Below, in pieces: positions 8,070-14,797 of a DNA stretch of 64,000 nt. Under the pieces are notes generated by a model that was not told the origin of the DNA, did not search any database, and saw only the letters and a list, made by a program, of their open reading frames with translations. Within the stretch, counting starts at the first letter, position 1. Every line of letters begins with the position of its first letter. Origin of the DNA: Parasitella parasitica NRRL 2501 (Eukaryota > Fungi > Mucoromycota); assembly GCA_025201805.1 (NCBI GenBank), contig MU619313.1, positions 34,848 to 98,847 of the forward strand, given 5' to 3'. The translations under genes and the position numbers were made by a program.

Positions 8070-9195
8070 TGGTATATTAATGAGTTAATAAAAAGGCAAA
8101 AGATATCTTTTCTCTCAATTCACTGAAGGAGAAACTCAAGGAATAGATTAGTCACGGCATAAACGCATGAATTCAGCCACATTTTACTTTTTAGGATGGC
8201 TCAAACAACCCTTTTCAAAAGAACAACAAATTATCACTATTGTGGAAAATCGGGAATATAATGGTACATATTGTTAAAGTTGTGTGAAGAAAATTGCAAT
8301 CAAATTTGATAATATTTCAGGAAGATGAACTAGTAATGAAGTGCTTATTGATCACGTTTTGTATTTTTATTGCCTTTGCATATAGCTACTTCGGAAAGTG
8401 TATATAATGCAAGTATTATGTCCACTTCAATGGCCAACACAACGGGTATTCAGAATAACCTATATTTCAGGACGTTGATCTTCTTTTTTAAAGGCTTCAG
8501 CCGATTTCATATAAGGATGGTTCATAGGACATTGTAGCAAGAAGTATGCACTTGCAGGTTACTGGTTAGATCATATGTGATTATAAACGCGTTACCAAGG
8601 CGAGCATACTTATAGAAGACGTTTGTCATCAAGAACAGAGACCCGTAGCATCTGTCATAAGGTCCTTTGTTCCTCTGATAAACGAAAAAAAGTTACATCA
8701 TTAGCAAGGGAGCAAGCAACAATCAAATATCGAAAAGTCTGGGTTAAACATGTTTTTGTCTTTGACCTATAAATCTTGATCCACTAGAAAAATAAAGCTT
8801 TGCAATAGGTTTATTGACCCACTTTATGATGAGTCCCTTTTCACTTTGAAAAGTGACAGGGAATCAATGGTGTGACAAAGCATAACAGTTTCAAACGCAC
8901 AGAACCTGCACCAAGCCTTAAAAAATATCGTCTTTAAGGGACATGTATTTACAAGGCTTCCTTTATTGAAGTTGCAATAGCAACATAAATTATTTAAATT
9001 TCATTTTTTTTTTTTTTTTTTTTTTGATTTAGTTAGCATGACAAGTTATTGTTAACAAATATATTTATTTTATTAACATCAAATCTCTGAAGAACCTTTT
9101 TTATTAACCGTTTGTTGGTTAACTTATAAGTGGTCGAGCCACTAACCTCCTTTAGGCGGTCCTCCCCATTGTTTGAGTAGATTGTAGAAAGAATA

Positions 9196-9262
9196 CTTTA
9201 AATTCAGACGCTGTTAGTTTTTTTCTGGACGAATGAAAGTTAATATCCAGACGTTTAGCTTA
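9196..9262 (+). repeat. Left terminal inverted repeat
   Basis: CTTTAAATTCAGACGCTGTTAGTTTTTTTCTGGACGAATGAAAGTTAATATCCAGACGTTTAGCTTA is the reverse complement of 14454-14520 with 3 mismatches. Confidence 0.95.
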
Positions 9263-9806
9263 TAGAGATATATGTTAGACTTTTTCACCTACTACCATCC
9301 AATAATGTAGTATGCTAATTGAATAATTTCTGGTCCTGTACGACGAGAGACAGTGGATGCAGGTGGATCTCTGAGACTGAATTTATTTGAAGAAGGCTTG
9401 GTTGTACTTTGCGGTGAAATAACCTTTGAGGTTTGATGGATGATTCTTGCTATAGTATAATGATCCCGGGACAAAACCAGATATATTATAGTTAGTTGAG
9501 GATATAATGCTTGTATAGAATCTCAGCGATTAAATGACAATTTAAGTAAGAGTCCAAAATATTTTAACGTAAAGAGGGCAGGTGGGTGTGCCTAATTTTA
9601 TAATCTTAAATTAAATAATCCTTAACAACACAACTGGTGGTCGCCTCAAGCATTTGAGCCATAAGCGAAGACCGAAAAAAAAATGACAAACTCCAAGGCG
9701 GGATACCACCCTCTCATCAGTAATAATATAAATGTTGTCCGTTTAATCACATTTTTTTAAAATCTTTGATAGATTGTTTTTCTTTCACTTTCTTACTCTA
9801 TTGAAC

Positions 9807-12800
9807 ATGTCTAATGAATATTGGTCTGACATTATTAAAATAAAGAAAGAAACGGTTTTCAACAATCGATTGGTATTTAATGAAGGTCAGAACTTAATAA
9901 AAATATATATAAGAGTTTTTATTAACTGATATTACAGCAAATGCAAAGTGTACCGACTGTGAAGAAGTAGGCCATTTCAATAAAAACTACTAAAAGTGCA
10001 AGTTTTACAAAGGAGCAACCACTGATGATGGTATGGCAGTTTGATATTAGTTATACTATTTACATATAATAATGATCACATCTGGTTGGAACCTCAAGCA
10101 AGAAAAGAAAGCAAAGCAGAAGTTTGAAGCAAGATAAACAAACAGCAAAACGACAAAAGACCACAAATGATAATGTGTCCAATCTTCATTGTAAGAAATG
10201 CGGTGGTAATAATCATGCTATAGCAAGATCCTCCTTATGCCCACACAGTATAACATCCAGAGCTAAAGTACTAGAACAGAACCTTGGCACTAATTACAAG
10301 GCATTCACAAGAAAATTACCTTTTGATAGCTGCATCAATCAAGCTCACCGCCATATTAAAACCAACGTCATATAGACTTGTGCTGCTGTGAGGGATATCA
10401 TAGATAGAGCCAAAATTTTTGTGAATTACTATGTCTTGTCGAGCTCAAGTGGACAAGTCCCCGATGGTATCTTCAAGAAAAACTTTTGGTACAGCATGTG
10501 TCAACTGGTAAATAGCCAAAGAATCACAAACCAGAAGGGCATACCAGCCGATTTAATTACTGTATGGAACGATTTTCGTAACAGATACAGACATGCCAGT
10601 GTGAATATCAAACTTCTTCCAGGTGCCAGTCAGTGTATCTCTGAAGCATGCACTGAAATCGAAATGCTGTATAATAACATGATTGTCGAAACATTTGAGC
10701 TTAAACTTCTGTCTTTTCTTCACTACAAGGTCCAAATGTTATTACCGGTAAGCGTAATATTTCATTATATGACAATCACTTATATAACAAATCAATAGAA
10801 TATCACAAAACGCTCTATAATTGATTTTTTTTTTTTTTTTTTGTATTAAAGTTTATCTTTATTAAAATTTCATGATGAAACTATAGATTAGGTACAGGCA
10901 AGGTCAAGGTGCCAGCTTGAACACTTGCCAGAGGAAAGAGAAGAAAGTAGTAAACCATGTTAACACATGCCGAAGCAATCCAGGGCTCCGTGTCTATGAC
11001 ACATCGCCAATGATATTTCCAAAGTGTACTGTAAGCAGTACCAAGAGCCACCATAACCTCTTCATCGAGCATCTCCAAATCTTGAGAACAGAGACTAGTG
11101 AGAGCTTGCCAGATAGACATGGCAGTTGGGAGGAGATCCTGCAGGGACAGCAAGGATACAACATCTCGCCAATACCGGGCTTTGAGGGAACAGCCGACAA
11201 CAAAATGTAACAAGTCTTCTAGAGCAAAACCACACAGAGTACAAAGAGGAGACGGAACTTTTGCTGGAACTATACGATGGCACCAAGAGCGGTGAGCCAC
11301 ACGATCAAGCAACAATCGCCACCAAGGTGTGAATGCTTTTGCTGGCAGCTCCAGGGACCAGAAAAGACGCCAAGAAGGAGGAGGTAGTCGCAAATGGATA
11401 GGCAGACGAAGTGGAGGACCCATACGAGAGGTAATGATATCCTTTGCAGGATGCCAATACCTTCGCAGGGCGTTCAAAGACAAGCGAGCCATAGGAACAG
11501 AAGAACGAGAGGAATTGGAAATTGTCTAGTGTGAGCAATCTGGCATCCACGAAGAAGCACCATCAGAACGGGGCATAGTATGATAGTCTGCATGACACAA
11601 GACTATCTTACTATCCATGACAGGCGGGAAAACCAGAGAGACAGGACCAAAATCTTTGTTCATATCCGAAGAAACGCGACGAAGTTTAGTAGGCCATGAC
11701 AAGTGACGAGTAGTACCATCCACAATGCCAAGATCAGGACGCCAAGAGCAAATATCTGATACCAAGTAGCGAGGATCCAGAGTAGCAGGATCAATCATTG
11801 AAGAATCTGGAGGCACATTACTAAGTACATAACATAATGGAAAATCAAGAAACCACCTAGCAGACCAACTAGAGGAAGGAACTAGCTTGGGTAGTTTTAT
11901 CAGTAGATTGCTGAGATGTTTGAGAACAGGAACAGAAGATACACGAAATTTGAACTTGTCAGGAAAAGAGAACCAAGGCAAGACAGATTTATGACCAGTG
12001 TATACTTGGAAGGCGTAAACCAACCAAGCAGTGACAAAATTAGAAGGAGAAGGTGGACGCAACAAGCGTTGCAAATAGACAAGATGCAGAGCCAAGCTCT
12101 GATCTGCTATATCCACCAAACCAACACCACCAAACTTGCGAGGAAGACACAAAGTCGACCAAGCAACACCAGGACGAAACGACACCAAATACTCCCGAAC
12201 TACTTTCTTGAGAGCCATCACCCACGACTCAGTAGCAGGGCCACCAGGAACACCACGCAACAAATGATACACCTTAGGCAACAGCAACGAGTTAGCCACA
12301 AGTCCAGCTTACCGAACGGAGAGATTTCTTTGCTTCAACAAGTTACAGTGCCTTTGGACCTTTACTAATAAGTCATTTAGAAAATCACTCAGTTGACTAT
12401 CAGTATGATACAAGGGATAACCCAAGTATCGGACCGCACCACAAGAGAGAGCATTATGCCACTGGAGACCAGCAGCATGCGCCAAAGCAACCCAAGCGGA
12501 ATGCGGCCTATCAGAAAGAGACACCAGCATAGTCTTGCTAAGATTGGCCTTCGCGTTAGACGCTCGGCCATACATATCCAAAAGAGACAACAAGACTGGC
12601 CACTCATCTGGGGACGACAAGAACACTTCCAGATCATCAGCATAACTCAGAATCTTGACAGGAGACGGAGCACCAGTACGACTAACAAAGTCCAATTGTC
12701 GATTGCAGGAGCCATCACCAAGATCCTCACGAACTTCCACCGGGTTCTCTAATTGAATCAATCTCTAGTAAATACTGCTACCATATGTCAAGGGAACCCT

Positions 12801-14320
12801 ACCTGGCCTGAAGATGACTGCATAAATGAACGAGTAAAAGCAGCCATCCACGATATGTGTACACCTTTCAAGCAGGCACTGAATAGAAAAGTTAACTTGA
12901 GCGAACTTGCAAAAGATCCAGCCGTGTTTGCTCGATTTTTATTATTTCTCAATGCCGGATTGGAGCGCGAAATCGAAGAACATAATCCTTACGATGTGAG
13001 GCGACTTCCACTGCCAAAGCTCATTTCGGTGTTGCCAAAGGCATCAACACATTGGAGATCACTCACAATAAGTGTGAACGCCTTGTCATGTTTTACAAAA
13101 ACACCACTGCCACGGGGATTCCAAAGACAGCTGATGTTGTTTTATGATGTTTTCAATTTTGGGAAACTGCGATACAGAGAGTGAGTATAGAGATTGTATC
13201 AAATCAGGCTTATGTATTTCTTTGTAGCATTGCTGAATTAACACCAGATGGAAACAACCAGATCATTTTTGGAAACTTGATACGGACTGATGGTTTTGTT
13301 GTGGATTTTTTATTCTACAAAAGAAATCAAACCAATTACGGTTCTTCTTTAAAAAACTTTACCAGAAGTAGCAGAAAAATATCACCCCATTTTTGTTGAC
13401 CAAAGTCAGCATATACTGCCCGTGAGTGGGTTAAACGCGGTAAGCCACCCAATAATCCGCTGCAGTGCTAAAGAGTACTATCATCTTACTGGCTCGACTG
13501 TTATTTCTGCCCAGCAGCAATCTTTGAAAAGTCAAAACGGAATAGAGGGTATTGAATCAAGCATCCCCACAGCCAAGACATCAAACCCAGAGCGTTTTTT
13601 AGACTATGTGCAATATCTGCTTAACAACATAAATACTTTATTCAACTTTTACAATTCCAGTACTGCAAAAAAACGCTTCCAACTTTATCAAGGGAGGCAA
13701 AAAGCGCAAGAAACTATGGTCAATATGCTTATAAACAGCGACACCAAATCAAAGTAGGAGAAAAAGGAAGAGGCAGAAAAAGAAGAAACAAACGAAGAGA
13801 AGAAGAGACCAAATAAGAAGGATGCTATCAAGCACAAATATTTACTTGAGTATATTCTAACTTTTTTTAATAATATTTGTATTTTGGAAAAAAACTAAAC
13901 AAATGGAGGCCTGTCAAATACAAAGAAGACAAGACGAAGGTTTTTCTGGTAGTGTTTGGAGATAGAATGTTCAACAAAGACACCAACAAGATCAGGACGC
14001 TCAGAAGTGGGGTGACGGGTATTTTACGGCGCACGCTGAAAAAGCGAGAAGCGGCTGGACAACTCATCACAATCACAATTGACGAGTTCCGAACATCCAA
14101 AGCATGCAGTAAATGCCAAACTCTAACCTTGACGCCAGCCTCGACTGATACTAGAATGAGTGTGCTTGCTTGTTCTTCTTGTCGTACTCTTTGGCAAAGA
14201 GACATTAATGCATCCCGAAACATGATGACAATCTCTATCGGCATTTGGCAGGGACGAGAAAGACCAACACCTTTTCGACGCACCACCACCACCACCCCAC
14301 CGCCGCCGTCATCACTGTAA
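9807..14320 (+). pseudogene. Fanzor1 (eukaryotic TnpB-family RuvC nuclease), intron-containing, disrupted
   Basis: Motifs: IRTDGFVVDFLF, YHPIFVD (RuvC-I Asp 13398-13400), CSAKEYYHLTG, VVFGD, IDEFRTSKACSKC (Glu 14084-14086), CSSC and WQRDINASRNM (Asp 14201-14203). GT-AG introns at 9886-9937, 10748-10798 and 13181-13227. Lesions: TAA 9991, TAG 10373, L1 insertion, and frameshifts near 12781, 13360, 13401-13421 and 13745. Confidence 0.9.
10825..12749 (-). mobile_element. 5'-truncated L1/Tx1-like non-LTR retrotransposon (RT C-terminus plus zf-RVT), degenerate
   Basis: Minus-strand ORF pieces contain KILSYADDL, VRYLGYPL, NSLLLPKVYHLL, LPRKFGGVGL and CTLC...EDLLHFVVGC. Poly(A) tail is T18 at 10825-10842. 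TAATTGA direct repeat at 10818-10824 and 12750-12756. In-frame stop at 12309-12311 and a frameshift near 11526. Confidence 0.93.
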
Positions 14321-14328
14321 TAAAAACA

Positions 14329-14540
14329 GCTTACCTAGTGTATTTAGATGACAACGTTCACTCAACTTTTGTTGTTTGGATGCTTTATAGGTAAGCGTCT
14401 AAACATACATTTCTATTCGTCTGAAAAACTAAATATGCTTCGTCTAAAAAAGGTAAGCTAAACGTCTGGAAATTAATTTTCATTCGTCCAGAAAAAAACT
14501 AACATCGTCTGAATTTAAAGTAGAAATACTGTGCTGTACC
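14329..14540 (+). ncRNA. Candidate Fanzor omegaRNA (scaffold plus flank-derived guide); boundaries uncertain
   Basis: GCTTACCTA (14329-14337) pairs with TAGGTAAGC (14388-14396), and the stem extends inward through four G:U pairs. A second hairpin TCTGGA/TCCAGA lies in the TIR. The position between the nuclease stop codon and the element end matches known TnpB/Fanzor loci. Confidence 0.55.
14454..14520 (-). repeat. Right terminal inverted repeat
   Basis: Reverse complement of 9196-9262, followed directly by TA. Confidence 0.95.
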
Positions 14541-14797
14541 GTAGTCCAGAGCAAAGACAACATGAACCGGCCCGCTTTTATTGTTTGATGTCTGGCTTAC
14601 TCAAACCTTGTAAAGAAAAAATAAATAATTAAAAAAGCGTTTTATAGCATCTCTTCAATATTTCTTTGTTTCTTTCTCTTTTTCTCCTTTCCAATATTAT
14701 TTTTCTTCTTAAACCTTGTGATAGGGGTATCATCTAATAACATTCGTAGGCATTCTATAAATTCCATTTGTTTATTTGTCATATACCTTACACAAAG

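Follow-up and report, generated by a model that had tools for sequence, protein, structure and literature searches.

A decayed Fanzor1 transposon in Parasitella parasitica and a candidate guide RNA completed by splicing of its right terminal inverted repeat

Introduction

The closest described relative of the element reported here is Spu-1 of Spizellomyces punctatus, in which a single gene for the Fanzor1 nuclease SpuFz1 lies between inverted repeats and no transposase is present (PMC10432273). Two conserved bases before its left repeat, CA, complete the measured target-adjacent motif (TAM), CATA, in a one-sided pattern, and some of its copies have received retroelement insertions. Here, we analysed 64,000 nucleotides of the Parasitella parasitica NRRL 2501 genome (contig MU619313.1, positions 34,848 to 98,847 of the forward strand; hereafter the window, whose numbering is used throughout unless a locus is named) and describe a Fanzor1 transposon copy that resembles Spu-1 in each of these traits; SpuFz1 is also the best fold match to the model of its subfamily (TMq 0.59-0.60). 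The two differ in that the repeats of Spu-1 are 30 nt long and its omegaRNA is a contiguous 88-90 nt, whereas the terminal inverted repeat (TIR) here measures 78-135 bp and is apparently spliced out. Moreover, the proteins are about 17% identical, the gene here has several introns and N-terminal zinc knuckles, and the predicted TAM is AATA. The window copy is an ordinary relic of the Spu-1 kind, and Fanzors were known from its host species before.

PpFz1 (PMC11423790; PDB 9cf0-9cf3) stems from the same host species and has the Fanzor1 fold, and its listed omegaRNA contains TGCAG followed by GTAAGC (Table S3). It belongs to another subfamily: neither P0005 nor the window exon gave a sequence match to it, whereas locus L030 matches PpFz1 at 5e-123, and the subfamily described here, judging from its length (720 aa), would lack the long insertion at the FRI position. 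The TAM of PpFz1 was reported as ATN and its omegaRNA was mapped in yeast as unspliced (PMC11423790). Neither this assembly nor the compared loci contained the PpFz1 omegaRNA pattern.

Fanzor1 genes in Tc1/mariner elements, such as PUl-4 and PGv-1, have been described as Fanzor-only elements with mariner-type TIRs and TA duplications (PMC3627910); as far as those descriptions extend, the Mucorales families were MuDR-like or unclassified, while the mariner cases came from oomycetes and viruses. In IStrons, bacterial TnpB elements with group I introns, splicing and guide RNA formation take place at the same transposon end (PMC10690162, PMC13565253). There the whole element self-splices in competition with guide formation, whereas here the guide scaffold would arise through removal of a short spliceosomal-type intron.

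Results and discussion

A dead member of a Fanzor1 transposon family

The window element is dead and single-copy. It belongs to a family of non-autonomous Tc1/mariner-type elements in Mucorales, about 3.4 kb long, that target TA, have CAGT ends and carry a Fanzor1 nuclease. As the best overall explanation of the locus, we regard it as probable, with considerable room for error, that this dead copy comes from a family whose guide is completed by splicing of the TIR, whose TAM is AATA and whose copies are retained through the action of Fanzor itself.

A first-pass annotation of the window had named the nuclease a Fanzor1 and the element non-autonomous and TA-targeting, and both assignments held, the latter on the CAGT ends and the TA duplication seen in the family. 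The spliced protein model, searched exon by exon, is closest to proteins of Cokeromyces recurvatus (77-78% identity) and Mucor flavus (52%). A subfamily hidden Markov model reached GtFz1 at 1e-15 and SpuFz1 at 1e-13, against about 1e-5 for TnpB, Cas12f and Fanzor2. The Fanzor1 grouping (expanded REC, 600-800 aa) was tested on P0166, a 720-aa M. flavus protein 45-55% identical to the window exons: its AlphaFold model (pLDDT 88) matched SpuFz1, PpFz1 and GtFz1 with E-values of 1e-17 to 1e-20 and the next class at 2e-5, solved Fanzor1 structures being the only strong matches. Profile and fold models, which rank SpuFz1, PpFz1 and GtFz1 first, thus place the subfamily in Fanzor1 and not in TnpB/Fanzor2.

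An apparently spliced tail and its candidate omegaRNA

The 3' end of the element and the adjoining flank carry the following features:

14311-14390, plus strand: candidate omegaRNA scaffold, 5' part, with a conserved small stem-loop at 14313-14329 and one long hairpin (z -5.3 for 14321-14400)
14391-14520, plus strand: 130-nt spliceosomal-type intron spanning almost all of the long right TIR, with donor GTAAGC, branch point CTAAC at 14499 and acceptor AAG
14521-14533, plus strand: TIR remnant with the target duplication, which is TG in this copy and TA in sisters, forming the 3' arm of a splice-dependent hairpin in the local junction fold
14534-14553, plus strand: host sequence following the duplication, predicted to serve as guide (on the basis of the junction hairpin and PMC13565253 section 6.2)

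Sequencing runs that bear on this region include X7, an RNA-type run of the same species; X13, an RNA-type run, by a guess at its RNA status, of organism C, which holds a sister copy about 97% identical; and X8, a DNA run with the same organism label as X13. A 1,448-nt contig of X13 matches the window up to 14387 and continues with CAG, TAGAAATACTG, TA and about 280 nt of flank, where TAGAAATACTG is the last 11 nt of the TIR. It corresponds to the exact removal of 14391-14520, and the same contig is free of the intron 13832-13887. The tail is unspliced in X8, and the joined form occurs in none of the DNA loci compared. The first-pass annotation had overlooked the intron that removes the right TIR, as well as a retrotransposon insertion and a one-sided AATA flank described below; the right TIR end that it proposed coincides with the intron acceptor.

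When the short RNA junctions were folded locally, the exon end paired with the TIR end and the TA duplication over 7 bp, capped by a GAAA loop. This register fits, because the 3' target-site duplication belongs to the solved Fanzor scaffolds according to a review (PMC13565253 section 6.2). In six loci the first stem of the scaffold is conserved, with a pair changed on both sides from C-G to U-A; Rfam and tRNA scans, which included the scaffold, gave no match. In all six families with a readable tail, TACAG or TGCAG stands at or within 2 nt of a donor located 126-330 nt away from the element's end. Three unrelated TIR types have an AG 8-13 nt in from that end, and the TACAG/TGCAG motif pairs with the terminal CTG plus TA. 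Among 69 donor-like control sites in the window (AG followed by GTAW), exact TACAG was never found (0/69), and full pairing with G-U allowed was found in 5/69.

From the one contig and this conservation we infer a spliced guide, and we lean slightly towards the view that Mucorales long-TIR Fanzor1 transposons assemble their guide RNA by spliceosomal removal of the right TIR, the junction making the last scaffold hairpin and setting the register such that the guide follows directly on the TA duplication. A spliced omegaRNA of a Fanzor was not found described in the literature searched, which covered few subscription journals.

Several observations weigh against this proposal. The tail splice was seen in one contig only, from a run that is RNA-type by guess, and the exon end and the acceptor share 6/7 bases, such that a one-copy DNA deletion could give the same junction. 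In the same-species run X7 the tail is unspliced, although its contig is chimeric at the TIR. Furthermore, PpFz1 cleaved DNA in vitro when supplied with a 71-nt RNA that is contiguous in the genome (PMC11423790 Table S3), and therefore splicing may not be needed for activity. The window copy itself has a C-to-T change 3 nt before the tail donor.

The alternative is an ordinary SpuFz1-like element with an unspliced omegaRNA. GGUAAGC would then be structural, pairing with the upstream GCUUACC, as the unspliced fold does (14329-14337 with 14388-14396), and the tail intron would be an incidental intron of the 3' untranslated region (UTR) or a one-copy DNA deletion. The unspliced X7 tail agrees with this, as does the published PpFz1 omegaRNA, which has GGUAAGC inside SL2 and is active in vitro. 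However, the GCUUACC partner is missing in the M. flavus, C44 and C33 families though their TACAG-donor context is kept; about 140 nt of shared TIR would precede any flank; and the junction stem takes in the target-site duplication, as in solved Fanzor1 scaffolds. We therefore consider an unspliced omegaRNA possible but unlikely.

If the splice does make the guide, it would explain how an RNA-guided nuclease works within a cut-and-paste element whose long TIR would otherwise separate scaffold and guide, and it would link the activity of Fanzor to the splicing machinery of the host. The guide RNAs mapped in yeast or Escherichia coli would then be the unspliced form; this may hold for the published PpFz1 omegaRNA too, which has a consensus splice donor in the context found in these families and whose last 27 nt may be intron or TIR rather than flank. 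More generally, omegaRNA boundaries taken from foreign hosts may be wrong for these enzymes. The proposal gives a testable design for an uncharacterised 720-aa Fanzor1 subfamily: a short scaffold ending on TA, the guide directly after it and AATA as TAM.

One-sided flank bias and a proposed retention cycle

The left flank is the second element of the preferred explanation:

9192-9195, plus strand: left flank AATA, target site and predicted TAM (from the flank bias), its TA merged with an internal TIR TA

Related copies of at least three families in two genomes were oriented by their Fanzor gene. The left TA is preceded by AA in 13/15 copies, as compared to 1/18 right ends (Fisher p 2.3e-6; background 11%). 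Since in SpuFz1 such a one-sided pattern coincides with the measured TAM, 5'-AATA at the left flank is the predicted TAM of the nuclease.

Combined with the spliced tail, this leads to the following proposal. A transcript would read through the right end into host DNA and lose the 130-nt intron, and with it nearly the whole right TIR (seen once, in the about 97% sister). Splicing would join the hairpin scaffold to the last 11 TIR nucleotides and the TA duplication, giving a closed, GAAA-capped terminal stem with the flank directly after it as guide. A DDE transposase would excise the element in trans; the nuclease would read 5'-AATA of the left flank as TAM and cut the empty site, and repair from the sister chromatid would restore the element there. 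Copies would thus be retained through Fanzor-driven restoration of excised sites, which would account for the AA before the left but not the right TA of those that survive.

Alternatively, the AATA bias might reflect an asymmetric target preference of the mobilising transposase, with Fanzor as a passenger that has no role in element retention. The nuclease activity is a prediction, and most observed copies are pseudogenes. Yet the bias is common to families with unrelated TIRs, and an oriented, one-sided preference is not expected from symmetric dimers. Tc1/mariner transposases work as such dimers on both ends. Together with the SpuFz1 precedent, this renders the passenger explanation improbable.

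Ends and target site of the element

The outer boundaries were redrawn as follows:

9196-9262, plus strand: left TIR remnant, outer 11 bp lost and inner part shortened (sister-end alignments, Cokeromyces TIR, organism C joint)
14454-14531, minus strand: right TIR of 78 bp by its match to the family core, or about 135 bp if the subterminal stretch from 14397 is counted, with ACTG at its end (sister ends, contigs)

The near-perfect inverted repeat first proposed, 9194-9262 and 14454-14522, was recovered with 66/69 matching bases (64/67 without the TA), and it has 20 matches genome-wide. Its TA dinucleotides, read at first as flanks, are both internal to the TIR. Aligned sister ends extend the repeat 11 bp outward (TA, then CAGT(T/G/A)TTTC, then TACTTT and onward), and Cokeromyces copies show the same extended terminus. 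A 17-nt terminal pattern has 16 exact genome matches, and in this copy the right end lies at 14523-14531. As DNA contigs of two runs depart from the window sequence only after 14532 and the sister ends align accordingly, the true right end of the element is 14531, followed by TG. The left end is without the outer 11 bp and reads AA plus TACTTT, and we propose that the tip was lost by an 11-bp deletion between two TAC trinucleotides of the terminus. The TIR of the relatives measures about 135 bp at both ends, the Cokeromyces left TIR matching window positions 14397-14530, and hence the left TIR here is shortened on its inner side too; in the organism C sister, 9275 and 14403 are joined on opposite strands.

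TA on both sides is found in L021, L022, L024, L025, L026 and the M. flavus copies; in this copy the right side is TG and the left TA is merged by the deletion. A longer, MuDR-like 9-bp duplication was rejected, as the flanks do not match. The right flank (TG CTG TA CCG TA) was considered as a series of tandem excision footprints, a reading dropped because orthologous Mucor DNA has similar host sequence there. An X7 contig in which the right flank differs hinted at a second copy of the element; this was rejected, since that flank is the one at the left end of the C44 element, joined through the shared TIR. In Mucor circinelloides and M. velutinosus the CBS-PAQR interval, whose comparison the first-pass annotation had suggested, measures 1.6-1.9 kb and is free of the element. 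A single-TA empty site there is tentative: the orthologous interval has AGAATA at a plausible insertion point, which may be the empty site within the limits that divergence sets on the comparison.

That the copy is a complete, recently mobile unit with 67-bp TIRs, TA duplications and working sisters in this genome, for which the 96% identity between the two arms would speak, is highly improbable, and both the alignment of sister ends and the read contigs refute it: the true termini are 11 bp beyond the proposed ones, the left tip has been deleted, a retrotransposon sits inside and the interior is single-copy.

The nuclease gene

The gene comprises the following exons and one insertion:

9288-9885, plus strand: 5' UTR with intron 9720-9772, and first coding exon with ATG at 9807 (X7 skips 9720-9772 and 9886-9937 at GT..AG)
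9938-10030, plus strand: exon with first CCHC-type zinc knuckle and premature stop at 9991-9993 (87% identical to Cokeromyces P0001)
10099-10747, plus strand: exon with basic stretch, second zinc knuckle, WED/REC start and premature stop at 10373-10375 (M. flavus P0166 alignment; weak zf-CCHC_6)
10825-12749, minus strand: 5'-truncated non-LTR retrotransposon (long interspersed nuclear element, LINE) in a coding exon, 1,925 bp, with poly(A) as a T run at 10825-10842
12757-13180, plus strand: remainder of the REC/WED exon (50% identical to P0166 residues 269-401)
13228-13831, plus strand: exon with the RuvC-I Asp (13398-13400) and five indels (Cokeromyces alignment; indel comparison with organism C)
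13888-14320, plus strand: last coding exon with RuvC-II Glu (14084-14086), C4 ribbon and RuvC-III Asp (14201-14203) (PF07282, exon alignments)

The scattered open reading frames (ORFs) of the first-pass annotation do form one spliced gene of about 770 codons in our exon reconstruction, three 5' introns (including 10031-10098) being removed in X7. The motifs were likewise where the annotation had placed them: PIFVD at 13386-13400, IDEFRTSKAC at 14078-14107, WQRDINA at 14192-14212, the RuvC acidic residues and the C4 zinc ribbon (PF07282, E-value 1.9e-10). The order of the Fanzor1 signature is preserved, D-X(125-275)-[TS][TS]XX-C4 zinc finger-X(5-50)-RD with a Glu just upstream of the zinc finger, from Asp 13398 through IDEFRTSKAC to WQRD at 14192-14203. 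The exon 10099-10747 is 45-53% identical to P0166 residues 31-248. Two CCHC-type zinc knuckles are present N-terminally (9938-10250), of which the 720-aa M. flavus protein keeps the second only.

The supposedly complete unit holds a pseudogene. At the first premature stop, 9991-9993, Cokeromyces P0001 has Tyr. Relative to the LINE-free, about 97% identical organism C sister, the RuvC-I exon carries -26 nt at 13355, -7 right after the Asp, +1 at 13419, -5 at 13746 and -4 at 13799; the 7-nt deletion takes out PGR of DPGR, such that neither an intact frame nor DPG is left. Both splice sites of intron 13832-13887 are mutated (GC..GG), and the intron is retained in X7 and spliced in the sister run X13. 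Two stops, the LINE, five or more indels, the loss of PGR and the dead splice sites make the nuclease gene a pseudogene. Deprived of its left tip, right TA, reading frame and DPG motif, the copy can neither transpose normally nor encode a nuclease. The locus remains transcribed from the plus strand, as is evident from the removal in X7 of the three 5' introns and of a cryptic GT..AG intron at 13439-13516, whose donor arose by mutation in this copy.

The LINE accounts for 1.93 kb of the 5.3 kb between the ends first proposed. It is flanked by a 7-bp target-site duplication (TAATTGA at 10818-10824 and 12750-12756) and has about 50 genome matches, up to 96% identical, and its RVT_1 (E-value 8.7e-5) and zf-RVT (5.9e-6) domains both fall just short of the Pfam cut-off. 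With a reverse transcriptase domain, a 3' poly(A), a short duplication, 5' truncation and multiple copies, the insert is a non-LTR retrotransposon. The contigs of the organism C sister, which is without it, join across the insertion site.

Relatives and transfer between fungi

The intact sisters of the same family that had been expected elsewhere in this genome, and that might have supplied a working nuclease, were not recovered. The interior is single-copy, its best 3' relatives being fragmentary and 75-80% identical, and therefore the genome holds no close intact sister; most elements with this TIR encode another Fanzor, with 31-35% identity across the last exon, and the closest Fanzors that look intact are bounded by another TIR. 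Intact-looking kin of the subfamily occur in other fungi, namely M. flavus (P0166 and P0167, 720 aa) and organism C (about 97%). In Cokeromyces, the copies occupy other loci than the window copy and are pseudogenes with internal deletions.

The LINE-free relatives in another fungus (about 97%) and in Cokeromyces (89% identical over the aligned bases, introns and UTRs included) suggest horizontal transfer of the window element's relatives among fungi, on a comparison with few host genes: one conserved host gene is 77-79% identical between Cokeromyces and Parasitella. Between Parasitella and M. flavus, a M. flavus cullin fragment gave no DNA match, and SPT3, 82% identical as protein, was taken as the host comparison instead; the SPT3 exon next to the element is 100% identical to a P. 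parasitica protein. A strong candidate for horizontal transfer is a second Fanzor1 family whose TIR starts with CAGTCAGGCTGGG (L034:1704-5128 and L035:2078-5300; G000 C8 and C21). It is 96-98% identical between Parasitella and M. flavus (L056-L062) and 94% identical to Pilobolus umbonatus, and it has intact-looking 720-aa members.

A young 3.6-3.8-kb family (L021-L025, L027, L028 and L041; G000 C46, C25, C2, C188, C8, C35, C104 and C4) has the window TIR at about 85% identity and a Fanzor merely 31-35% identical, with its tail donor about 330 nt from the end. From such sequence comparisons, ends and nuclease cargo look swapped between Fanzor families. The PpFz1-like Fanzor of L030:3574-5160 (the E-value of 5e-123 refers to PDB 9cf0) and of L031 lies between related but distinct CAGTTTTTTAA-type TIRs. 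P0151 (RVS89416.1), a 170-aa member of a Mucorales-type Fanzor cluster on a 535-bp contig, is labelled Klebsiella pneumoniae, probably through contamination.

Mobilising transposase and other mobile elements

The element holds no transposase, as first annotated. The suggested genome search for its TIR gave the 20 matches mentioned above; the autonomous DDE partner with the same ends that was also to be sought was not found among the listed DDE_3 matches, which counts against our proposal. The genome has at least 171 such matches, and among those listed, none is enclosed by these TIR pairs except a nested insertion in L027. This Tc1-type DDE_3 ORF (L027:3149-3826) was rejected as autonomous partner, since it is nested in a copy of another Fanzor family without paired ends. 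A 5-kb pair of the same termini at G000 C12:213698-218667 encloses no listed Fanzor or DDE_3 match and is a candidate for the autonomous partner or for other cargo.

Two tiny palindromes consist of two fused TIR ends, one of 70 bp and TA-flanked (L032:1062-1131; G000 C16:304661-304730) and one of about 34 bp (G000 C82:75522-75555). Apart from the L027 insertion, DNA transposons nested in or overlapping Fanzor copies include an 850-bp long-TIR miniature inverted-repeat transposable element (L038:2157-3010) and a 2.2-kb TIR element (L037:1-2239). LINE-like reverse transcriptase ORFs directly adjoin two copies of the shared-TIR family (L022:4824-5672 and L023:4800-5690).

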